Sequence record: NC_070998.1
Strand: one strand, 5' to 3'
DNA: 64,000 nucleotides
Made by a program: the position numbers and the translations under genes. The stretch's first letter is position 1. Every line of letters starts with the position of its first letter. The notes beneath the pieces are model-generated. The model saw only the letters and a list, made by a program, of their open reading frames with translations, was not told the DNA's origin and did not search any database. Below, piece by piece: positions 38,635 to 52,339 of the stretch.

Positions 38635-41600
38635 TTAATTCATCCTCACCCCACTTTGTTGTTTAGCGAGACGATTGATACCTTCATTCAGAGTATCGAC
38701 GGATGTGATCAACCTAGCCATTGCAGCTGTGTTGGCTTCATCGTTAACAGCCAGAGGACCGTCAGGTAACTTGAGTTCTACCGGAACTTCTTTGGTAGAT
38801 GTCTTCATTACATTAGACTGATTAACAGCAGGGGTATTAGTTGCTGTATTACTCGGTTGTTGCGGAGCAGCAATACTCGGTGGAGGAGCCGGTACCTTAG
38901 GCTTACTAGCAGGAGAAGCTGTAGGAGTACTAGTTGGTGAAACAGGTTTATTAGAAACCTTAGCAGTATCTGCCGCGTTCATCAAACTGTTGATGTCCTC
39001 CTTAGCATCTGGGTTAACAGCTTTGTTACCATCGACGTGATCAGGTGGAACATTACTATCTGGAACAGAAGGTAATTGGGCTTGTTCGTTACTAATCTGA
39101 ACAGAGCCCTGTTCACCAGTATCTGGTACAGATATATCTCCCCGGTTAAGACGATCCAAGTACTCTTGATAGTATTGCCTACGTTCATCTGAGCCAGGAA
39201 CGGGATTACCACCATTGATACCACGCATGGCGGTTTCAAAATCACCTGTCTGGGCAATAGAACGCATAGCTTTACTATTAAGTAAGAATCGTACAGCAGA
39301 TTCAGCCATTACGTTAGGATCTTCAGACACGATACGTGGATTGGATACAACATCAATCCCAGTTTCTTGTTTGAATTTCTCGTAGTTAGCCTTGCCTGTT
39401 AACTGGAACAGTCCTCTACCACGGTATAACCAACCGTCTTCCGGTTTAGTGTTACCAAGCGTCGGACCTTTGGGAGCTCTACCGTAAACGTACATGGCGC
39501 GTTCAGGCGGAGACATGGCTGCAACCTTTTCAGCTGTGGCCATATCAGGAATATTACGGAAGTACCTCTTCAGAGTAGGGGCAGACCAGTTGGTATTCTC
39601 TACAGTAGCTGAATAGTTCCCTGTTTCCTTCTTAGCCATAGCCAACGCAAGAGCCAACATCTTCTTATCAGTTACACCAGCTTTTAACAAGTGGTTTAAT
39701 AAGAGCTGTTCACCTTGAGCAGGATCCATCTTGATCCCTTTGTCATCACCTGCTAACTTCTGGAACTCTGGATTAAAAGTATCTGACCAACCAAGGTTTA
39801 CATTCCCGCCTTGTAAGTTGTAGTTAGTACCAAACCCAATACCGTTGTTATTACGACCATCGGCAGTAAATGAATTACCAGTTCCACCACCGTAAATACC
39901 AACATTACCAGCAGAGACATTTCGGTTTTTACCATACACTTTATCAAACAGTGCATTGGTATTAACCTGGACTTGGTTAGAGTCGATTTTACTTCCGTTT
40001 ACTTTCTCATCGTAAGTAAGTGAACGCTCATCTTCTAACTCAGGTTCTTTCAGTCTTGCTTTTGTGGCCTTAGCATCCAAAGACTTAAGATACTTCTCAA
40101 CACGATCAGGCCAGCTACCAGAATTGGAATTTTCAAATGGAGATACTTTCACATCCCATACTGACACTTCTTCTTGCTGATATATAACCCGAGTTTCTGA
40201 TAAGAATCTAGCCAACTTAGCTTTGTTGGTATCAGAGAGTGATCTCCAACCTTGCTTAGGTAGCTGATTACGGAGACGTTTCATTTCCTTAACGTATTGT
40301 TGTAATACAGGTAAGAAACGATTCTGGAACCACAGATGCCAGTTAGACTCACCATTAGTTGTTTCAATCCTAAATTGCGCTTTAAACAGATTAAATACTC
40401 TAGTAGGGTTACCACTAAAGACCGCTTCCGTTCCAAGCGTGTTAATCAGATCTTCACAATAACGTTCCAGTCTAAGTACGGCATCTACTCGCCAAGGCAT
40501 GTTGTCGATGTTACCATAAACACCTAAACGGACCATAGTAAATGGATCGATAGCTGTATTAGCATCTTTATGCAAATCAGAGATATCGATTTCTCTTACA
40601 GCTTGCGGTGTTTGGAACTTACGATCAACTTCTTCCTGAGCGAGTTTATTAGCTCGATCTCCAAAACTATTACTGAACCACCCTGCAAGACCGTCCGGAG
40701 TCTTTTCGTTGAGCACTCTGCTACGACGCTCTACATCTGTTTCTAGTTTGAACTCTTCTTCAGGAGTGGGGTATTTCTTACGAAGTTCTGACAGTAAAGA
40801 ACTAACCAAGTTCTCAGTCATCACTCGATTAAGAATACCTTCCCTTGGATCTATCTGAACTTGGACTTCATAAGGGAATGGATCCAAAGTACCCATAGAT
40901 GTTCTTACACGTTCACAGAGTAGTGTAACTTCATAGCTCTCTTTGCGGTCAAACTCGTTGATGTCACCATGTCTACCTACGGATACTGCTACAGCGTACA
41001 GCAAGAACACTGGTTTGAAACGTGCATTAAACCAAGTGTGAACTTGATCAAATGGAACACTATCTCCACCTTTAGCAAACTGCTGGAGGATCTGTGCAAC
41101 AGGAGCATTTTGGGTAAAACTTGCCCTGTTATTAGCAATAGCCAAATGAGGAATTAATGCTTGTTCCAACTTAGAGACACGTTTAGCCAAATTACCGTCA
41201 ATACTCTTGATACCGTACTGAGCATAACGAATGCGACGTTGTAGTGAATCAGGAATCTCTTTAGCGCTAACTCCACCAGCACCATCAATGTAAGCTTGTG
41301 CTTCACGACGGTCAGTAAAGAAGGTTCCGTCAGGAGCCCAGAATACACCCTTGTTATCGATAAAGTCACTAGCGGCTTTTGGTAACAAGAATTCCTTAGC
41401 TGTTTTCAAAGCAAGTGTAGGTAAGAAGAAATCAGAAGCAGTATCGACAACTTTCTCCATAGTAGTTAACTTTGGACCATTATCGTCTTTACCATCTTCG
41501 TACACATCTCCATCAGTGGGTTCATCTTCACCACCAAAGGCATCGGCTGCGTACATCCCGCCACCTACTACAGCACCAGTACCTAGTAAAGCAGCCAACA

Positions 41601-44600
41601 TCTTACCACGACCACCCAACTTGCCAAGCGCTCCACCGATCTTACCTCTTACCCCTCCTTTACCAGCACTACCTAATGCATCCCCTAAACCACCTGCTGC
41701 TGTTTTAGCCATGGTGGCTTTAGTCAGAGCAGTGAAACCCCACTTCATTAATTTGAAGATGGGAGAAGCTACACCCAACACTCCCGAGAACAACATACTA
41801 CCGATAGAAGCTAAGCGTTTTCCAGAGTTAACCAGAGAACCCATAATCAAACCACCTAAGGTTCCAATGGGATTCTTAATAAGACGCATGGCAAAATCAC
41901 CCATCCCTCCCATCAAGCTAAAGAGTTTACCGAAGATGCCTTGCTTTTCGGTTTTCTCTCCCTCTTTAGGTTCTTTCATTCCTTCAGCAATATCGATGAT
42001 GGAGTCCTGAACCTTTTCTTGTTTCTCTGCTTTCTCTTGACGGATCTTATCTTCCAGAGAGTTTAACCTCAAACCTTTAGTGATAGGCGACCCTATTGGA
42101 TCACTTTCACCATCAAAGTTATCTGGAATATCAATACCAAACTTCTGAGACAATATAGCATAGATACGATCTAAACGACGTTCAACACCACGGTTACTAC
42201 TTTGGCCTGGTTTACCACCTACAGAACCTTCTGTATCACTCTGTGGACGATTATAACCGAACTTACCTAAGATGGTATCAAGACCTGATCTAGCCAGTCC
42301 AGCGGCTGTTTCTGCTAATCCTGAAGCAGCACTACCTACAGCTCTTACTTTCTGACCAGTTGCTGTGATAAGACCTTGATCAAACTCAATTTGAGAGATA
42401 ACCTCATTCCCTTCACTGTCATAAACAGGTCCAGTTATTTCGTTCCATCCCCAAATAGGTTTAATAGAACCAGTGGTATCTTCAATTGAGTATTCACCTT
42501 CTTTGAACTTCACAGCTCTAAGTCTAGGAGTCTTCTCACCTTTCACATATACATCTTGCTGGTAAATGAGATTCTTACCCATCTCCATCACAGACTTAAT
42601 ACGTGTTAGTGGATCAACAAAGTTATAAGCACCAACTACGGCATCTTTGAGCTTAACAATGCCAGAGAGAACCACCGCTCTACCATCAGCACCAAAGATT
42701 TTACCACCTAACTCCTTAATAGTTATGGTAACCTTTTCAGCTGCATCAAAGATTGGACCTTTAATATCACGCCAAGTGTTTATCACACGACGTTTTACAG
42801 CATCGTAATAATCACCAGCTTTTAACTTAGATGACTTAAGAATCGGGTTGCCGTTCTCATCAAGAATATCTTCTTCATCAGAAGGTTCGTCACCTACCGC
42901 ATTCTCATTGTCAACCCTACCCCAATGTTGTACTAAAGCACCTAGAGCGACACCACCTACTCCAGCGGCTGCTGCTAGAATTGGATTTTGGATAAAATGA
43001 GAACTAACACCACCTAAAATAGAACCTAAGATTAATGGCTGGTTTTGCATAACCATTTCAAACCCTTTACCCAAGATATTAGTTGGGAGGATTTTCTTAA
43101 GTCTATTAATAACATCAAAGTTATAACGATCAGCTTGACGTTCCTCAGTTTCTGACTTGGCTTGCTTGTTAAACAATTTACCATCTTTAACAATAGTCAA
43201 AAGTTCTGTAAACAACGCATCCATATTAGAAGTTGAAGTTGCGATCTTATCAATGTTGGTAATTACTTCACCGGTATGTGTGTCAAAGTAAGCCTGTGGT
43301 CCCTTAGAACTTTCTGTATTAACTTTGGAAGTATTATCAACCAATCTGCTAAGCTGAGCTGACAAATCGCTTATGGAACTATTGAGTTCGTTAAACGTAT
43401 TGTTAGTAGAAGCTGAACCAGTTGGTGATTTAGGAACGATGAATCCACCTTTACCGTCACTAACAGGTTTCTTGGAAGTGGTATCGAACATACCCTTCAA
43501 TTGAGGGTTATTAGGGTTCTCCATGAACTGTCCCAACCTTTCGTGGAAAATGTCCATGTTAACTTTCTCTACCCCAGCTTCAGTGTAAATGACACCAAGA
43601 TCTCTAAGGAGTTGTTCATTACCAGTAGAACGAAGCATGTCGATGCGCTCTGCTACATTGGGGAAAAGTTCCTTCATGTTAGCAGCAGTGGCAGAAGCTA
43701 CGTTAAGGCGCTCGTTACCTTCATTACTACGCATGTCGGTCATGCGCTTAAGTTTATCAAAACCCTTAGCAGATTTAAACTCAGAAACATCTTGGTCATT
43801 AAGTCCAAAGTGACGTTTCATTACAGCATGGATTTCTTTTTGGTGAGCGCCAGAAACGTTAGGAATATCACCAAGATAATAGAATGGGTTAAACCCTTTC
43901 TCTTGATCGACATCTTTAGCGATCTGTTGGGCTAGCGCTTTTCTAGCACCAGCGCTAAGAGAACGCTCTGTATCCAGCCCGTCAACCATCTCCAAAGCTG
44001 CTTGAGCGTAACGACTAAAGTCTCCGTAAGGCATTAAATCAGCTTTAACAGAAATGCGCTTTTCAGAATCAGTTTGGAACTGACCACGCATATAGTTATA
44101 GCTTACACCTTCGATATTCTTTTCGCCAGTACGAATCCCTTCGGTGCTGGTTAAGATCCTACTAAGCAACCCTGGGATAACCTCATTGAGTGTGATATTG
44201 TTAGTCTCTTTCCAGATACCTGGATTATTGAGATCTTTTACATTACGTTTATTAAGGGTATATTGAGTGCCACGAGATTTAGTAATCTCTGACATGAAGC
44301 TGTTAACGGAAGCTTTAGCTTTGTTGGTGGCTGCATTCTTAGCAACCCAAATAGCCTTTGGAATAGGTTTCTTACCAGGAGGAAGTTGATCTAAGTAATC
44401 TTGATAATCAAGATACTCCATCTCGTCCATAGCTTCGTAATCTTCAGCAAGGTAGTTAATTAACCCAACACCAGAAGTAGAAGCGTAAGAAGCTTTATTA
44501 CCAAAGTTAGTCAATTTGCCAAACATTTCTTGGAACTGCTTAGCTTCTTTGGGATTTTTAGCTGCTAGCTTATTAATCCAATCTTTACCTTTACCACGTT

Positions 44601-45678
44601 CAAAGAAGTAAGGAATATTGGAAACGAACATACTACCGAGTTGTTTGCCGATTAGATCACCAATCATCCCTTTGGACATCGGCATTCCATCTGACATGTC
44701 TAACATATCAGCAATTTGTTCTAAAGCAAAATTACCACCTTGATAACCTTCTTGTCTAGCCGACTTACCAAACTTATCCTTAATTAAACCAGTGAGTCCA
44801 CCTACACGTTTACCTATTGTGCTAAAAAGCTTATTTCTCATAAACTCTTTAGAAGCAGTAAAGTTGGACGTCTTTTGGTAATCGCTCATCATACTTGCTT
44901 TTTGAATCTTTTTCAATTCAGCAATTTCAGTATGAATTCCTTTCTCCATAAACTTATAGTACTTGACGTTAGAAACGTAAGTTTTAGCTAATAAAGAAAG
45001 CTTAGCCTGATCCATTCGAAGTTGGACGTTACGTTGGTAGTTAACCAGATCACGCATTCCAGATTCGATGTTAACGAGTTGTCTATTACCAGAAGAGATA
45101 CTCGCGGTGATCATCCCGCCAACATGAGCAGACATGGTATTTAATGTTTCACCTAAAGCTGTGAACATTCCTTCTTGAGCTTCAAGAGAGCGATCAAGCG
45201 CAGCAGCAACATCGTAGTCACTAGTTTCTTCTATAGCTAAACCAGGAGCTTCATAACCACCTAATTTCTCCCAACTAGAAAAGTCTTTCTGGGAGAAATT
45301 CTCGAGCTCATTTGTAATTGAACTGGGCATTCTTTCGCCCATTTTCTTTGACAGATGACCCGCAATGCTTTGTAACGATTTAACAGAAGAAGCATTTTCT
45401 TCTTTAAATTCTGTTTTTAATTCGTCAAATCTACGACCAGCCCAGCTGACCCGATCTAACGCTGTGGAGAATGATTTAGGAAGAATAGTACGAAGTGTTC
45501 GCATTCTTGCTTCGCCACTTCCAACTGTTTCATCGACAATCCCAGAAAGGAATCCGGAGGCCATCCCTCCGACAAACCCTTTCTTTGCATACGGATCCAT
45601 ATCAAAATCCATATCAAAGTCGAGATCTCCACCAAAGGGATCATCATCCCAGTCTAGATCATAAGTATCACTTGCCAT
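38635..45678 (-). CDS. large tail protein / tape measure with C-terminal GH19 peptidoglycan hydrolase (phiKZ gp181 / EL gp183 equivalent)
   Basis: about 2350 aa; KETG, EN.N.S, GNT..EDGW.YRGRG.FQLTGK.NY, INGG GH19 motifs; start placed at MASD behind GGGGG RBS. Confidence 0.8.
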   Translation of the reverse strand: MASDTYDLDWDDDPFGGDLDFDMDFDMDPYAKKGFVGGMASGFLSGIVDETVGSGEARMRTLRTILPKSFSTALDRVSWAGRRFDELKTEFKEENASSVKSLQSIAGHLSKKMGERMPSSITNELENFSQKDFSSWEKLGGYEAPGLAIEETSDYDVAAALDRSLEAQEGMFTALGETLNTMSAHVGGMITASISSGNRQLVNIESGMRDLVNYQRNVQLRMDQAKLSLLAKTYVSNVKYYKFMEKGIHTEIAELKKIQKASMMSDYQKTSNFTASKEFMRNKLFSTIGKRVGGLTGLIKDKFGKSARQEGYQGGNFALEQIADMLDMSDGMPMSKGMIGDLIGKQLGSMFVSNIPYFFERGKGKDWINKLAAKNPKEAKQFQEMFGKLTNFGNKASYASTSGVGLINYLAEDYEAMDEMEYLDYQDYLDQLPPGKKPIPKAIWVAKNAATNKAKASVNSFMSEITKSRGTQYTLNKRNVKDLNNPGIWKETNNITLNEVIPGLLSRILTSTEGIRTGEKNIEGVSYNYMRGQFQTDSEKRISVKADLMPYGDFSRYAQAALEMVDGLDTERSLSAGARKALAQQIAKDVDQEKGFNPFYYLGDIPNVSGAHQKEIHAVMKRHFGLNDQDVSEFKSAKGFDKLKRMTDMRSNEGNERLNVASATAANMKELFPNVAERIDMLRSTGNEQLLRDLGVIYTEAGVEKVNMDIFHERLGQFMENPNNPQLKGMFDTTSKKPVSDGKGGFIVPKSPTGSASTNNTFNELNSSISDLSAQLSRLVDNTSKVNTESSKGPQAYFDTHTGEVITNIDKIATSTSNMDALFTELLTIVKDGKLFNKQAKSETEERQADRYNFDVINRLKKILPTNILGKGFEMVMQNQPLILGSILGGVSSHFIQNPILAAAAGVGGVALGALVQHWGRVDNENAVGDEPSDEEDILDENGNPILKSSKLKAGDYYDAVKRRVINTWRDIKGPIFDAAEKVTITIKELGGKIFGADGRAVVLSGIVKLKDAVVGAYNFVDPLTRIKSVMEMGKNLIYQQDVYVKGEKTPRLRAVKFKEGEYSIEDTTGSIKPIWGWNEITGPVYDSEGNEVISQIEFDQGLITATGQKVRAVGSAASGLAETAAGLARSGLDTILGKFGYNRPQSDTEGSVGGKPGQSSNRGVERRLDRIYAILSQKFGIDIPDNFDGESDPIGSPITKGLRLNSLEDKIRQEKAEKQEKVQDSIIDIAEGMKEPKEGEKTEKQGIFGKLFSLMGGMGDFAMRLIKNPIGTLGGLIMGSLVNSGKRLASIGSMLFSGVLGVASPIFKLMKWGFTALTKATMAKTAAGGLGDALGSAGKGGVRGKIGGALGKLGGRGKMLAALLGTGAVVGGGMYAADAFGGEDEPTDGDVYEDGKDDNGPKLTTMEKVVDTASDFFLPTLALKTAKEFLLPKAASDFIDNKGVFWAPDGTFFTDRREAQAYIDGAGGVSAKEIPDSLQRRIRYAQYGIKSIDGNLAKRVSKLEQALIPHLAIANNRASFTQNAPVAQILQQFAKGGDSVPFDQVHTWFNARFKPVFLLYAVAVSVGRHGDINEFDRKESYEVTLLCERVRTSMGTLDPFPYEVQVQIDPREGILNRVMTENLVSSLLSELRKKYPTPEEEFKLETDVERRSRVLNEKTPDGLAGWFSNSFGDRANKLAQEEVDRKFQTPQAVREIDISDLHKDANTAIDPFTMVRLGVYGNIDNMPWRVDAVLRLERYCEDLINTLGTEAVFSGNPTRVFNLFKAQFRIETTNGESNWHLWFQNRFLPVLQQYVKEMKRLRNQLPKQGWRSLSDTNKAKLARFLSETRVIYQQEEVSVWDVKVSPFENSNSGSWPDRVEKYLKSLDAKATKARLKEPELEDERSLTYDEKVNGSKIDSNQVQVNTNALFDKVYGKNRNVSAGNVGIYGGGTGNSFTADGRNNNGIGFGTNYNLQGGNVNLGWSDTFNPEFQKLAGDDKGIKMDPAQGEQLLLNHLLKAGVTDKKMLALALAMAKKETGNYSATVENTNWSAPTLKRYFRNIPDMATAEKVAAMSPPERAMYVYGRAPKGPTLGNTKPEDGWLYRGRGLFQLTGKANYEKFKQETGIDVVSNPRIVSEDPNVMAESAVRFLLNSKAMRSIAQTGDFETAMRGINGGNPVPGSDERRQYYQEYLDRLNRGDISVPDTGEQGSVQISNEQAQLPSVPDSNVPPDHVDGNKAVNPDAKEDINSLMNAADTAKVSNKPVSPTSTPTASPASKPKVPAPPPSIAAPQQPSNTATNTPAVNQSNVMKTSTKEVPVELKLPDGPLAVNDEANTAAMARLITSVDTLNEGINRLAKQQSGVRMN

Positions 45679-45703
45679 ACATTCCCCCACTTAGGAAATA
45701 GCG

Positions 45704-47581
45704 ATGAGTAGACAACCTACTAACTTTACGCTGCTTGATCCTAAAACGTTTCCAATAGAACTCATGTCACCCGTGACAGTAGCAGATTCGTTTGAAGGTC
45801 AAACCACTAACTTACACGAAGACGGACTCTACTCGACCAGGATCTTTGGTCGAGTAGGTACTGATGAACGAGATAAAACCGAATCTTACATTAATTCCTT
45901 ATTGCCCATTTTCAATCCCACGTATTTTAAAGCATTAGTGCAGTTAAAATCACTTTACTTAGATATAGTAAAGGGTAAGGCATATGCTGTATGGGATGAG
46001 ACAGAACGTGATTTCATAAAATCTAACGTCCTGGAAGGCGATACAGGATTTGCGTTTTTTATGACTCATTTTGGTGAATTAGATCCAAAACCAAATCAGT
46101 CTTTTAAACGAACTCAGAAGATCACTTTGGTTAATAATTTCCGTGATCGAGCTTTGAATAAACACATTCCAGTTATTCCGGCGGGGATCCGAGACATTGA
46201 AATCGGACCTACTGGATTAGTTACTGAAAATGAGATTAACGATCTTTATCGTAAATTGATTTTCCGTACTAAGTCACTGACTACCAAGAACCCTGATCCA
46301 CTTGATCCAGTTTATGATAATATTCACTGGGGAATGCAGGAGTCTTTGAACAACATTGACCAACATCTCTTTGAGTTACAGGAGGGTAAACGAGGTTTCA
46401 TGCAGCGTCGAATGAGCCGACGTTCTATCCACTCTGCAACTCGTAACGTGATCGTCTCTCGTAAAGTCTCTGTAGAGAATATGGATGATAATGTCACTGG
46501 CGATCCTAACTCCACTTTTATTGGGATGTACCAAGCACTACTTGGCTATAACCTAGTTGCTACACACGAACTTCTTAACGGTTTCTTATCTGAAGTATTT
46601 ACTCCTGGTTTGGATAAAGCACGTCTAGTGGAACCTAAGAGTTTAGAGAGTGCTTATGTGGATGTAGATCCCTACACAGTAGATAAGTTTACTTCTGCCG
46701 ATGGAATTGGTAAACTCTTTAATGGGTTTAGTGACCCCAATGTTCGTAACCGTCCTATTAAGGTAGCTGGTCATTACTTAGGTTTACTTTATGACGATGG
46801 TAAAAACGTTTGCTTAGTTCATGATGTAAATGACCTAGGTGAAGGAATGGATAAGAAGTATCTCCATCCTGTTACCTATATGCAATTCTTTTATATCCAG
46901 ACCGTAAAAGCAATTGAAAAGAAGATGTTACAAATTACTCGTTACCCAATTACTGGGATAGGATCCATTGTACCTACACGAGTGTTTGTTCTTCCAACTA
47001 CAGCCACGTCAGAATCAAGAACATTGATTGACATCGATGGTAGTAAGTTGGATAGTTTTCACTTCTTTCCAGTGTGGACTAAAAATCCCAGTTACTTTGA
47101 TGGGATGAGTATTAGTAACGTACGCTTAGCAGCTGCTGGTGGTGACTTCGACGGTATTTCTGTTTGCCGCTTTTAGTAGTAATACTAATCGAATAAGTGC
47201 GGAATAAAGCAAGGAATCTCTCCATTTAGAGATAACTTGAACCGAAGGCTTACTGTAAATGGTAAGTCAGGGGCAGAGCGTAGATAGTGAACCTCTTTCA
47301 TTAAAGAGAATATAATCTATCCAAGAGGCCGCACCATCCTACTGGGATGAAAACGTACGCCGATACCCGGAGCGATCTGGGAGTGAAGATAAAAAACTTC
47401 ACATTAACATTTGGACCAACTATCAGCCAACAGCATTCAAGCTAAAGATTCAGTAGAAGAAATTGAGACTTTGTTTGGTAAACGTATATTCTATATTTCT
47501 GGAGCAGGTGACTTCCTATATGACCCTGTACAGGAACCACACGCGTTCCTTTTACGTTCATTGACCAATGGATTATCGTAA
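45704..47581 (+). CDS. rpoC: virion RNA polymerase beta-prime subunit, catalytic part (phiKZ gp180-like); spliced join 45704..47155, 47414..47581, 539 aa
   Basis: EGKRGF, RNVI, RYP, GGDFDG; splicing restores DFDG-D QLSANSIQ and a 55-aa exon 2 whose stop overlaps the next ATG. Confidence 0.9.
47156..47413 (+). mobile_element. group I intron (258 nt, no ORF) in RNAP DFDG/D motif
   Basis: 5-prime exon ends in U (GACGGT), intron ends in G; P1 CGGU/GCCG; P3 GTGCGG 47197-47202 with CCGCAC 47329-47334; Q-like GTCAGGGG; P8/P9-like hairpins. Confidence 0.85.
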
Positions 47582-50500
47582 TGCAAGAACATCCAGTAAA
47601 CTTTGACGAACTTAGCGGGCTAGAGGGTTTGTTATACTCTCAGTTCGTTAAACTACATGGTACACGAGAACGTGCTAATGATGTAGTGAATCCACGATAT
47701 CAAGTAGTCGGTGATATCATGTTACCTCGTAACAGTCTCATTCATTACCAGGGAAATATTCCTGGTGAATTGGGACCTAGTAACACCGCTGCTTTTATTA
47801 GTAACTATGACAAACGTATTAACATCTTTTTTAATGTTAAGTACGAAACACCTTTGGGAACAACTAAGATTGTTCCTATTCAGTTGACTAAGTTGATCAA
47901 GCAATATGAGGGTGGACATTACCTTTATACCCGTGCTCGTCAATACCAAACTGTAATTCACAAAGAAGGTGAATTACTGGTCAACAACTTAGCCATTGGT
48001 AAGATCCCTGTTCAGTATCGCAGACAAACTGTATTTACCCCATTCCAACGTTCCTATAATGAACTTTACACATTAATGGAGTCAGTGAATGAGTTTAGTC
48101 AATACGATATTCATCAGTTTGTAGAGTTTAAACTTCCACGTTCTTTCCCTTCTTATAAAACGTTAGAACTTAAATTTGAAAAGTATAAACGTTTCTTTAA
48201 TAGTGAAGGTGTTATTGAGAAATACGAGAAGGAAGCTCTAAAAGAATTCCAGGCCGAAGAGTCTTTCTGGCTATTAGATCTATTTGGTATTCTGATTGGT
48301 TTTGAGAATAAACAATACAGTTTGTTTAATCGATTGAATGACCGAGCTAGAAGTCAACTAGAATTGATCTTTAGTTATAACGGTGTGTGTTGGATTGCTA
48401 ATCTTCAAACACTGATCAATTTGATTGGGTACGATGATAAACCAGAAGACACTTCTCCCCGTCCTATTAAGTTTAACTACTTCAAGCGTTTCTACCTTGC
48501 TTTGATTTCTCTGGTGAGTCCGCTTTCTGAAGAAGTTGTGGAAGATAGCTATGACCAACCAGAAGAAACCGCCAAAGAAGAGGTGGTGGCAGATCGATCG
48601 GAAAAAGGAGAGAGAGGATCTGGACGAGAGTCTGAAAACAAGTCCCCTCTGGTACCTAGCACTACTCCTGGCGGCTTGGCTGATCTTTATGCCAGCAGTA
48701 AGGGAACTACTCCTGCGGTGTCTGATACCCCAGGAGCAAAAGGAGAGAAGACTACTGAAGGAACACTTCCTGGGGATTCCGAATCCGAGAATGACCCAGC
48801 ATCAGCTGAAAACTCTGGTAATTCCCCGGAAGAAGAATGGGGTGCGGACATAGACGATAGTGTCTTTGAACGCGCCAGCATCGAACAAGCCACCATAGTT
48901 AACTCTGAAGAAGCTTATTCGCCAGTTAGCACGATCAATCGCATTCTGGAACGTAAGGCAGCCAGGGGACAATTAACAACCAAAGAGAAAGAGTATTACA
49001 CTAACGCAAGTGTTTCTTATTTGGACATTGAGTTTGGTGGTAGACTTCTAGCTGAGATTGTTGATATCAAACCTGAAGACTTGGTGATGAAACCTAAAGC
49101 GTTTGCACCTAAGTCGGAAGCTGTTACAGATGAGTCTGTATTGCGTTCTAGAAGCATGGAACTCACTAATGGATATGTAGAACAATTCCTTGAACGAGAT
49201 ATCATGGGAGCGGTTCTTGCTGTTCAGAACGGCGGCACTGCTTTACTGGATCTAAACCGTGAAACTATTATCACTGCTGATTCCAAGTACGACGTTTACA
49301 AAATGAAACTTCAGCCTGTGGATAACGGCAATCAGTCTACTAGACAGTTCCGTTTACCTAAGGTAGCATCTGACGGTAGTTTTACTATCAACGGGGTTAA
49401 ATCTTACGCTCAGTTGGTCCGTATGGATCTTCCGGTTAGAAAGATCAATCCGGTTAAGGTAGCCATTAGTTCTTATTACGATAAGAAACTGATGATTGAA
49501 CGTTCTGCTTATAAAGTAGACGATTACAATCATTGGCTTAAGACTAATATCATCCAGAAGAGTTATGAAGATAAATCCATTACAGTTAAATTAGGTTCAT
49601 TCAAATCTGAGCTTAAAGAAGTGTGCTGGTATTACTCGGTATTAGCTTCTCGCTTTAAAGAGATTACTGTTGGTGGTTTGGAATTTAACTTTGATACTGA
49701 ATCTATTTTGGTGAAACACCCTAAATGGAAAAAGTATTGTAAAGGTGAAAGCTGGGTCATTGGTGATGAACACGGAGTTCCTGTACTAATCGATAACAGC
49801 GGTTTGGTAATGATCGATGGTGTAGAGAAAGGTTATATCGAAGAGATCCTTCGGTTACCTATGGCTAAAGCTCCAGTCCCTACTGCAACTGCGAACATTA
49901 ACGGATATAAATTCCCTGTAGTGGTGGTTCTTGCTTACTGGATCGGTTTTAGCGAACTAGTGAAACGCCTCAAACCCACTCATCGCGTTGTTGAACCAGG
50001 TACTCGCCCTATGCTTAATGCTAATGAGTATATTGTTCAGTTTGCTGATGAGCGTTTGATTCTTGACCGTCGAGATGGATTGAGTACTTTGATCTTCTCA
50101 GGACTGAGAAAGCTAGATGGTTTAGCAAACTTCTCCAAGGCTCAATTGGATGATCCTAACGTATGGTTCAGCTTGATTAATGATAGTCGTGTTAAACCAT
50201 CTCATTTTAAAGAGATGGATTTGATTTACGATATGTTTATTGATCCCATCACTGCTCGTGAATTGGAACGTCGTGGTTATCCTCTCATTATGGATAAACT
50301 AATCATCCGGGCCGTAGAAATGCTTCTTAACAACGAAGCAGAACACGAAGTAGAGATTGCTGAACAACGTTTGGTTGGTTTCGAGAGATTCCCTGGTCAC
50401 GTCTATCGTGAACTTGTTAAGTCTACCAGGCAGTTTAGGAACAAACCTAATACTGGTAAGAAGACCTTTGACTTAAACCCAGAAGCTATCATGATGAATA

Positions 50501-52339
50501 TCCTGACTGATAGCAGTATGCAACCAGTTGAAGAAGTCAATCCAGTCCATCAACTGAAACAGCAAGAAGAAGTTACGTTTGGCGGGACCTTTGGTCGAAG
50601 TGATCAAGCAATGGTACGTCGCACACGTGGTCAATTACCAAGTTACGCAGGGATCATCTCTGAAGCTGGTAAGGACTCAGGTAAAGTAGGATTTATCTCT
50701 TATCTAACTTCTGATGCCAAGATTGTTGACTATGCTGGTAACGTGGATGTGACCCAAGAAACCACCAATGCAGGTCGTGGTTCTGTAACGGCTAACTTAC
50801 TTTATGGTACAACACGCGATGACAGTAAAAGGTAAACACAGCGTCGACGACTTCGACGTTACTGCCCTTACACTTAGAAATGAGTGTTTGCATTAACCCT
50901 TAATTGCTGGGAAGTACTCAAAGATGCTCTTACCGAAACGGAAACCGAAAGGTTATATGGAAAGGTTTGAAAAGTAGAGCGGAGAGACAGTCAGCAGCGG
51001 AGCGTCTAAGTATATTCGTGATGAATAGATATGACGAGCGTTCAACGACTAGGGGTGAAACTCCCCGTAGCTGGAACAAGGAATGTTCCTACCAAACAGG
51101 GTTACCTTACTGTGTTGCTGAAGAAGCAACTAGACAGTTGGTTGAAATATAGTCTGCTCCTTATAGTGATATAGGGCGGGTGCTAGGTATCGCACCGGGT
51201 CTTAGGATAAGACTGGACATAAGGCGTTGTTCTCAGGTGTTCAGCTAAGTCAATGGATGGCTACTGATAGTTACGTTGCTAACCCTATTAGAACTCCTTC
51301 TGATAGCGTAGTAGCTTATCGTAACTCAGAACTCTATTGTTCTTATGCTAAAGAAGTGGGAACTATTACTGCTATCACTCCTGACGGGATGACTGTTAAG
51401 TATGATAATGGTAGTGAAGAGAAATTCCCACTTGGCTATGAAGTAGGTAAAGGTGCTGGTGAGTATCACAAACATCTTAAAATCACCGATATGAAAGTTG
51501 GTGACAAAGTTGAGAAAGGTGATGTACTTGCTTGGGATGATTGCTTCTACACTCGGGATTTAACCAATCCAAAACGGATTGTTATTAAGCTTGGGACAAT
51601 GGCTCGTATTGCATTGGTAGAAGATCAATTTACCTTTGAGGATTCCATTGGGATTACTCAGAAGTACGCAGATCTTAATACCACGCCATATCTCAAAAAC
51701 AATGAGTTTAGAATAGGTTATGAACAAGCCATTAAACTCTATGTCAAAGTTGGGGATAAGGTAGAATACGATCAAATATTAGCTGATGTGATGGATCCTT
51801 CTTCTGCCATGTTTGAAGAGGAAAGTGTTAATTCCATTGCTGGTTTGGATCGTCTTGGTATTAAACAGATCAAAGCTAAACAAGCTGGTATAATCACTAA
51901 GATCGATGTTATCTATAACGGTGACTTAGATACGGCAGAAGAGTCTTTGAAAACATTCATTCAGGAACAAGATAAGCTACGTGCTAAGAAAGCTAAGTTC
52001 AGAGAACTTGCTGCTACTAATGGGAACGTTGGTGGTAACACATCAGTAGGTAAGTCAAAGGTCTATCCCAATACAGCAGCAGTAACTATTACCATCGAGA
52101 GTAAACTCACCACCACAACTGCTGATAAGTTTGTAGCGGGTAACCAGATGAAAGGTACAGTAGGGTTTATTTACCCAGATCCTATTTATACTGTTGATGG
52201 TCGGGAAGTTGATGTTAAGTTCTCTTTGAAGTCTTTGCTTAACCGAATGGTATTAAGTCTTCGTGATAAACTGGTAGCTAATGAGTTGAACCATGTTTAC
52301 ACTAGTCGTATGATGAAAAAATATGGGAGATATGAATAA
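47581..52339 (+). CDS. rpoB: virion RNA polymerase beta subunit, N-terminal/middle part (phiKZ gp178-like); spliced join 47581..50833, 51225..52339, about 1455 aa
   Basis: NPVHQLKQ, GKDSGKVG, DDSKR/SLFSGVQ (cf. DDANRALMGANMQ), TFEDSI, DKF...NQMKG motifs. Confidence 0.9.
50834..51224 (+). mobile_element. group I intron (391 nt, no endonuclease ORF) in RNAP beta gene
   Basis: P AATTGCTGGGAA 50902, Q CAGTCAGCAG 50988, R GTTCAACGACTA 51040, S AAATATAGTC 51145; U at 5-prime and G at 3-prime splice sites; ACAGCG can pair with exon 2 CGTTGT. Confidence 0.92.

Follow-up and report, generated by a model that had tools for sequence, protein, structure and literature searches.

A predicted group I intron at the catalytic aspartate codons of an RNA polymerase gene in Aeromonas phage PS1

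We analysed a window of 64,000 nucleotides (nt) from sequence record NC_070998.1, which is the last 64 kb of the Aeromonas phage PS1/PS2 record, and found that the gene for a beta'-like subunit of the RNA polymerase (RNAP) is interrupted at its catalytic codons. With a probability that we put at roughly 93%, positions 47156-47413 (hereafter intron 1) are a self-splicing group I intron of the phage IA type, which holds no open reading frame (ORF) and lies between the Gly codon and the third-Asp codon of the DFDGD motif. A first-pass annotation of the window had proposed such an intron splitting the DFDG|D codons, and the proposal is borne out by intron-less alleles, by covariation and by an independent covariance model. 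The called ORF, 45704..47176, can be read directly to terminate in ...AAGGDFDG-ISVCRF-stop (490 aa), as the annotation had it. Excision of 47156-47413 (258 nt) joins GGT to GAC, and the frame then continues as GGDFDG|DQLSANSIQAK for 55 codons in all after the junction; this earlier reading was confirmed to the base, including the overlap of the stop with the start of the beta gene, where the last A of the exon 2 TAA (47579-47581) doubles as the A of the ATG at 47581. The annotation had also held that exon 2 was missed by ORF calling. Exon 2 is indeed not joined to exon 1 in the ORF list, but it was called as a separate 56-aa ORF with a TTG start (47411..47581), and GenBank carries it as hypothetical protein PS1_0228.

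The borders of intron 1 were given by alleles in which it is absent. In megablast comparisons, AVP1 and pAEv1810 (~94% identical) aligned with the window in two pieces, and exactly 258 nt were skipped between them. Each of the two genomes has one uninterrupted coding sequence of 1620 nt for a beta'-like protein of 539 aa; the protein encoded by exon 2 is identical to the C-terminus of these proteins, and that of exon 1 differs at 6 of 484 residues. Because the intron-less alleles lack exactly 258 nt, the intron borders and the terminal G47413 are fixed to the base. The base preceding the insert is T47155 and its final base is G47413, so the U / omega-G rule invoked in the first-pass annotation holds. 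A homologous insert was found at the same site in ACP1 (96.9%), CF8, ZPAH34 (about 88%) and AhC3_1 (80%).

The two exons together make up one RNAP subunit gene. Exon 1 matches phrog_2986, 'RNA polymerase beta subunit' (539 positions), over positions 6-487 (E 5e-176), and exon 2 continues at 488-539, with neither gap nor overlap. Exon 1 also matches the N-terminal beta' subunit of the AR9 non-virion RNAP (nvRNAP; 7s00_d, E 7e-7), and in a second, weak stretch of the alignment its GGDFDG falls opposite SGDYDG of AR9. The catalytic Mg2+ is held by the three Asp of DxDGD (PMC7598289), and we infer on sound grounds that the unspliced product would be catalytically dead. The intron opens with TAG TAG TAA at 47174-47182, in frame with exon 1, six codons past the 5' splice site and within P2/L2; relatives of intron 1 likewise run into a stop 3-10 codons past the splice site. 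Early stops in P2/L2 would keep ribosomes off the ribozyme core.

The helices of intron 1 are listed in Table 1. P3 and P7 pair as a pseudoknot, and the core follows the order P3-P4-P5-P6-P7-P3'-P8-P7'. The pairings proposed earlier for P1 and P3 were recovered, P1 as CGGU/GCCG with its U·G wobble and P3 with covariation in all of its pairs. The P1 wobble is the same in all five Aeromonas copies and in a copy from a Raoultella phage. In an Enterocloster relative, which lies in a different gene, P1 was read by eye as AGAGGU/GCCUCU, and the guide sequence therefore tracks a different exon. The stems of P2 and P9 have been rewritten between copies, and their loops remain GNRA. In P7, the pair G47278-C47360 beside the bulged A47277 is a candidate for the guanosine-binding pair, and all 67 sequences have G-C there. 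On the other side of the bulge, the pair is G-C in 42 of them and A-U in 25. An insert between P7 and the 3' strand of P3, either P7.1/P7.1a or P7.2, is typical of subgroup IA; judged from its sequence, with P7.1/P7.1a between P7 and P3', intron 1 is of the phage subgroup IA type.

On the core, the first-pass annotation needed correction. It had named GAGGC/CGCC as P7, whereas the actual P7 is G(A)GCGUA/UACGCC; GAGGC (47325-47329) spans the end of the CAAGAGG stretch and the first base of the P3 3' strand, and as P7 it is ruled out since it would overlap the covarying P3 3' strand. The description of the core as divergent holds in one sense only, namely that P7 is GCRUA/UAYGC and not GACUA/UAGUC. 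The ribozyme is not 'minimal' either, as P1-P9.1 plus P7.1/P7.1a are all present and 258 nt is a usual size for an ORF-less phage intron. A helix CCUCUU (47297-)/AAGAGG (47323-), perfect in PS1, was dropped in favour of P7.1a, as CF8, AhC3_1 and the Raoultella copy do not preserve it.

The fold was first read by eye and then tested by covariation against shuffled and slid controls. Among the five Aeromonas phage copies, 98.8% of cells were paired (4 of 332 unpaired), and 20 of 67 pairs had changed on both sides; none of 500 shuffles reached this result, and slid partners paired at 32-41%. Among 67 diverse relatives, 95.1% of cells were paired, compared with 30-44% for slid partners. That the substitutions between the Aeromonas copies preserve pairing shows that selection still acts on the fold. 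The minimum-free-energy (MFE) fold of the single PS1 sequence recovered every nested helix from P1 to P9.1 (z = -2.99). In addition, a covariance model of the core from P3 to P7', named R1, was built from 60 viral-contig sequences that include no Aeromonas or Raoultella member. It matched PS1 at 47193-47367 over its full length with 127 bits (E 2.4e-31) and no non-standard pair. R1 gave no other match in the window and none in the intron-less alleles. Further copies of the family in the window were sought and rejected, as a motif scan gave only chance hits and R1 found no second copy.

Table 1. Split RNAP genes and predicted helices of intron 1 in the window (positions are those of the window).
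Feature	Positions	Strand	Evidence or remark
Exon 1, virion-RNAP beta'-like N-terminal subunit gene	45704..47155	+	484 codons, ends ...GGDFDG; ORF and PHROG match
Predicted group I intron (intron 1), 258 nt, no ORF	47156..47413	+	empty-site alleles, covariation, model R1, MFE fold
P1 CGGU/GCCG	47152-47155 / 47166-47169	+	U47155·G47166 wobble at 5' splice site
P2 hairpin UUAGUA-GUAA-UACUAA	47173..47188	+	4/6 pairs changed on both sides; GNRA loop in 5/5 Aeromonas copies
P3 GUGCGG/CCGCAC	47197-47202 / 47329-47334	+	6/6 pairs covary; 99% paired (67 sequences)
P4 CAAG/CUUG	47210-47213 / 47236-47239	+	encloses P5 hairpin 47216-47233
P6 CC/GG	47242-47243 / 47270-47271	+	100% paired; UG/CA in family member L011
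P6a hairpin	47247-47268	+	ACP1: C-G to U-A double change
P7 5' strand G-(A bulge)-GCGUA	47276..47282	+	100% paired; 3/6 pairs covary
P7.1 GAUAG/CUAUC	47283-47287 / 47317-47321	+	5/5 pairs covary; 100% paired
P7.1a inner hairpin	47293-47308	+	supported in Aeromonas copy set
Joining stretch CAAGAGG, then P3 3' strand CCGCAC (47329-47334)	47322..47334	+	CCA(A/C)GAG nearly invariant in 67 sequences
P8 hairpin	47335-47349	+	5/5 pairs covary
J8/7 AAAACG	47350-47355	+	between P8 and P7 3' strand
P7 3' strand UACGCC	47356-47361	+	pairs with G47276-(A47277 bulge)-GCGUA 47278-47282
P9 hairpin, GNRA loop	47366-47381	+	4/6 pairs compensatory; loop stays GNRA
P9.1 hairpin, conserved loop AUAAAAAA	47383-47402	+	GAUAAAAARC loop in viral-contig relatives
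3' tail	to omega-G47413	+	terminal G common to ACP1, CF8, ZPAH34, AhC3_1
Exon 2, beta'-like gene	47414..47581	+	55 codons DQLSANSIQAK... and TAA; phrog_2986 positions 488-539
Beta-gene exon 1	47581..50833	+	phrog_3148 positions 2-1053
Canonical group I intron (intron 2), 391 nt, U50833 / G51224	50834..51224	+	RF00028 35.5 bits, E 1.9e-7
Beta-gene exon 2	51225..52339	+	phrog_3148 positions 1056-1422

Several observations weigh against a self-splicing intron 1. P1, with just 4 bp, does not vary between the RNAP copies and hence yields no covariation information there; P10 is weak. The 258 nt contain no ORF of at least 40 aa on either strand and hence no homing endonuclease gene, and no endonuclease is annotated near intron 1, in a region where the PS1 annotation of the last 50 kb reads almost throughout 'hypothetical protein'. 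R1 gave only 14 bits for the intron core of Bacillus phage Eyuki, which is of the Bastille/I-BasI type that has been studied by experiment. Literature searches on intron 1, on an intron at NADFDGD and on splicing or proteomic work with PS1, ZPAH34 and AerS_266 came up empty, RNA or protein data for PS1 or its relatives were not found, and the phage papers do not mention introns, so splicing is deduced from the sequences. Finally, the Rfam group I model RF00028 gave no match to intron 1, either at the gathering score across the window or at E<=10 on 901 or 271 nt around it.

We read the failure of RF00028 as a limit of the model and not of the RNA, and it does not lower our confidence that intron 1 is a group I intron. 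RF00028 was also run at the motif sites of 25 other loci with members of the same family (20 at the gathering score, 5 at E<=1), and none was called; canonical introns next to them in these loci were recognised by the model. A scan of the whole window at E<=0.1 returned intron 2 only. RF00028 is incomplete for several subgroups and phage variants, and the RF00028 and GISSD models under-represent phage introns (PMC11878797). Compared with the canonical core, the family has P7 GCRUA/UAYGC in place of GACUA/UAGUC together with a difference in P6/J6-7, and the P7 replacement is probably why RF00028 misses it. One member (L083) has a canonical P7 within an otherwise family-like core.

Three other explanations of the interrupted gene were weighed. 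The element could be a relic, that is, a group I intron that does not self-splice efficiently, either because a protein of the phage or the host is required or because this gene copy is becoming a pseudogene. The missing endonuclease ORF, the short P1 and P10 and the departure of P7 from GACUA/UAGUC would suit such a relic. Yet PS1, PS2, ACP1, CF8, ZPAH34 and AhC3_1 are isolated, propagating phages with the intron in an essential-looking gene, the few unpaired cells (4 of 332) speak for continuing selection on the fold, and the intron-less AVP1 allele encodes the very same exon 2 protein, with only 6 of 484 residues changed in exon 1. We therefore regard a relic as very improbable. It is highly improbable that there is no splicing and that the gene has simply been split once more, so that a 490-aa protein (...DFDG-ISVCRF) and a 56-aa protein (M-DQLS..., TTG at 47411) assemble with each other. 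Jumbo-phage beta and beta' are already made up of several polypeptides (PMC7598289), and the TTG ORF 47411..47581 exists and is annotated as PS1_0228. However, a mere spacer would not be expected to have the covarying group I fold that is found in the 258 nt separating the two ORFs. The gene is uninterrupted in sister phages, 47411 has no purine-rich ribosome-binding site in front of it, and the third catalytic Asp would come to lie at the N-terminus of a peptide of its own.

It is hardly conceivable that the insert arose as an error of sequencing or assembly, or that it is an intein, a small transposable element or some other insertion. Only the interrupted frame speaks for such a reading; no fewer than six phage genomes that were sequenced independently have the insert at this site, and covariation at the RNA level fits an intron and not a DNA element. 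It cannot be an intein because the frame entered from exon 1 runs for six codons and then meets three stops in a row.

For a self-splicing intron 1, the order of events would be as follows. In the pre-mRNA, the CGGU at the end of exon 1 would pair with the internal guide GCCG and form P1. A free guanosine held at G47278-C47360 of P7 would attack after U47155; the terminal G47413 would then take the place of the guanosine, and the freed exon 1 would attack after G47413. The joined exons would form a frame of 539 codons in which DFDGD is restored, with the junction peptide DFDGDQLSANSIQAK, and ribosomes on unspliced RNA would halt at TAG TAG TAA, six codons into the intron. We infer this chemistry and its independence of protein, as well as the inactivity of the unspliced product.

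Intron 1 is patchily distributed. PS1, PS2 and CF8 have both intron 1 and intron 2, ACP1, ZPAH34 and AhC3_1 have intron 1 and lack intron 2, and AVP1 and pAEv1810 have neither. Phages of a single genus, 94-95% identical, differ in the presence of intron 1. In comparisons of one genus with another, intron 1 shows 78-89% identity and its flanking exons 61-76%. PS1 and AVP1 differ by 15 silent changes from -13 to +27 around the site, with at least one in every codon, against a whole-gene rate of 5.6%. The patchy distribution and this run of silent differences may reflect past spread by homing, with an endonuclease that acted in trans or has since been lost; family relatives in other phages do carry endonuclease ORFs. 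The GACGGT|GAC flanks are also found in intron-less relatives, and therefore co-conversion, a P1/P10 constraint and target-site escape in AVP1 fit the silent differences equally well.

A second group I intron interrupts the adjacent beta gene. Intron 2 has a td-like core (GUUCAACGACUA...AUAUAGUCUG) and is inserted at ...DDSKR|S; its RF00028 score of 35.5 bits is under the gathering score of 50. Its exons add up to 3253+1115 = 4368 nt, which is the length of the continuous beta gene in AVP1 and ACP1. Direct comparison showed that intron 2 is absent from ACP1, AVP1 and pAEv1810, and ZPAH34 annotates a continuous gene. Silent changes also cluster around the intron 2 site. A 43-aa 'hypothetical protein', PS1_0230 (51021-51152), lies wholly within intron 2 and is probably a spurious call. 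PS1_0228 (47411-47581) and PS1_0231 (51227-52339) are exon fragments that were given TTG starts of their own.

Relatives of intron 1 occur in other phages. The motif GAACCGAAGG-N12-32-CAGGGGCA was found in at least 107 viral contigs of IMG/VR (L012-L118), and the GAUAAAAARC loop of P9.1 was present at 82 of 107 motif sites among the matches listed. Searches by blastn with intron 1 gave weaker matches to the core in split genes of Listeria, Bacillus, Raoultella, Klebsiella and Enterocloster phages, in gaps that carry no annotation. Members of the family lie in the gyrase A gene of Bacillus phage BpSp at G|EYHPHGD, in the topoisomerase II gene of Yersinia phage phiR1-37, where an endonuclease ORF accompanies it, and in the terminase region of Listeria phage LIS04, also with an endonuclease. 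Several members from viral contigs hold ORFs inside P8 or P7.1, and in three loci (L029, L009 and L011) a member stands ~60 to ~750 nt from an RF00028 intron; a distance of no more than ~200 nt from a canonical intron is frequent in the family. The marks of a possible subclass would be the P7 GCRUA/UAYGC, the motif GAACCGAAGG...CAGGGGCA and the P9.1 loop GAUAAAAARC. It is a speculative and rather doubtful extension that the PS1 intron represents a large unmodelled subclass of phage group I introns, in which ORF-less copies rely for their movement on endonucleases supplied in trans by introns that lie nearby or co-infect, and occupancy of the DxDGD site decides competition in co-infection.

The DxDGD codons are interrupted in other phages too. 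A Raoultella jumbo phage has a member of the same family at ...GATTTTGACGGT|...|GATACC (DFDG|DTM), which is the same G|D site as in PS1. BLASTP of PS1 exon 1 against the upstream ORF of the Raoultella phage found no similarity, so the two beta' genes have only the DFDG|D site and the intron in common. A canonical RF00028 intron lies directly upstream in the Raoultella beta' gene, with a mini-exon of ~12-21 nt between the two introns. In Raoultella phage VB_ZK_P1 (L009, 1537-2234) and Klebsiella phage phiKp_32 (L122), two introns of different families flank a tiny DFDG exon; the upstream one is RF00028-positive, the downstream one is of the PS1 family, and the beta' gene is very divergent. Among the relatives of exon 1 in IMG/VR, 17 of 20 are continuous. 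In one contig (L143, 3944-~4430), DYDGD|QLNS is interrupted by a canonical intron (51.2 bits) whose insertion point is 3 nt downstream of that in PS1. In two others (L137/L138, 3929-~5650), the same intron holds a 416-aa HNH_3 endonuclease ORF; exon 1 stops there after GGD, and a search for the YDGD codons, made to assign these two to a third insertion site, did not find them. These may be broken genes.

It is a classical finding that group I introns occupy catalytic codons of essential phage genes. T4 td/nrdB/nrdD, Twort orf142 and the DNA-polymerase introns of SPO1 and Bastille (I-HmuI, I-BasI) have the same helix order as PS1 intron 1. Like it, these IA introns have additional helices separating P7 from P3', a GNRA loop on each of P2 and P9 and in-frame stops soon after the 5' splice site, and they are inserted at conserved motifs. 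The PS1 family differs from them in that a C-G follows the presumed G-binding pair in P7, where the T4/Twort/SPO1 type has GACUA/UAGUC, and in its distinctive P6/J6-7 sequence (GAACCGAAGG...CAGGGGCA); moreover, RF00028 detects these phage IA relatives but not the PS1 family. Comparison by blastn showed that the I-BasI-type intron of Eyuki and the family consensus have a common 3' domain (P9, the P9.1 loop GAUAAARRGC and an ...AUAACA tail), and the Eyuki intron also has the CCACGAG stretch of the PS1 family.

The PS1 element is a new, unannotated case of a known kind, as a group I intron in a jumbo-phage virion RNAP has already been studied in PhiPA3. There, a group I intron with the HNH endonuclease gp210 interrupts the virion RNAP beta gene gp211/209 (Birkholz et al. 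2024, PMC11620839), and the endonuclease was shown to affect competition between co-infecting jumbo phages (PMC11620839). Both cases concern conserved catalytic-region codons of a virion RNAP gene in a nucleus-forming jumbo phage, and both have intron-plus and intron-minus alleles among related phages. The PhiPA3 intron lies in beta, right after two conserved Asp, whereas PS1 intron 1 lies in beta' at DFDG|D; it is PS1 intron 2 (50834-51224), ~10 nt past the DD codons, that occupies the neighbourhood of the PhiPA3 gp210 intron. Unlike that intron, PS1 intron 1 has no endonuclease ORF and belongs to a family not recognised by Rfam. In phiKZ, the predicted intron-associated endonucleases gp56, gp72 and gp179 likewise mark jumbo-phage polymerase neighbourhoods with predicted group I introns, for which ONT-cappable-seq showed no splicing (PMC10914365). 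The phiKZ cases are defined by endonuclease ORFs, whereas that of PS1 is defined by the RNA fold and an empty-site allele.

These results bear on annotation and on experiment. With intron 1 removed, beta' is one protein of 539 aa and not a truncated 'RNA polymerase' plus a 'hypothetical protein', which corrects at least six deposited Aeromonas phage genomes; several of the affected phages have been put forward as therapy in aquaculture. In PS1, PS2 and CF8, the beta gene has to be corrected in the same way. Since a family found in at least 107 viral contigs is invisible to Rfam, surveys of phage introns undercount. Homing and interference could be tested in a natural system, as closely related phages (PS1, ACP1, AVP1) differ in whether they have each intron. 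In nucleus-forming phages, splicing must run without coupled translation.

PS1 and PS2 belong to the genus Ferozepurvirus and have genomes of ~237-240 kb; by megablast, positions 46400-48200 of the window are 100% identical to both. Relatives of PS1 encode chimallin and two multisubunit RNAPs (PMC10321303, PMC10673249), and for this reason the PS1 group is placed among the phiKZ-like, nucleus-forming jumbo phages. The gene cluster around intron 1 consists of a minus-strand ORF for a 2351-aa 'endolysin'-like protein, the beta'-like gene and a gene for a 1455-aa beta-like protein, which is annotated in ZPAH34 as virion-associated RNAP beta. The 2351-aa ORF (38635-45690, minus strand; 'putative endolysin') is transcribed divergently from the RNAP genes, and this arrangement is kept in all relatives.

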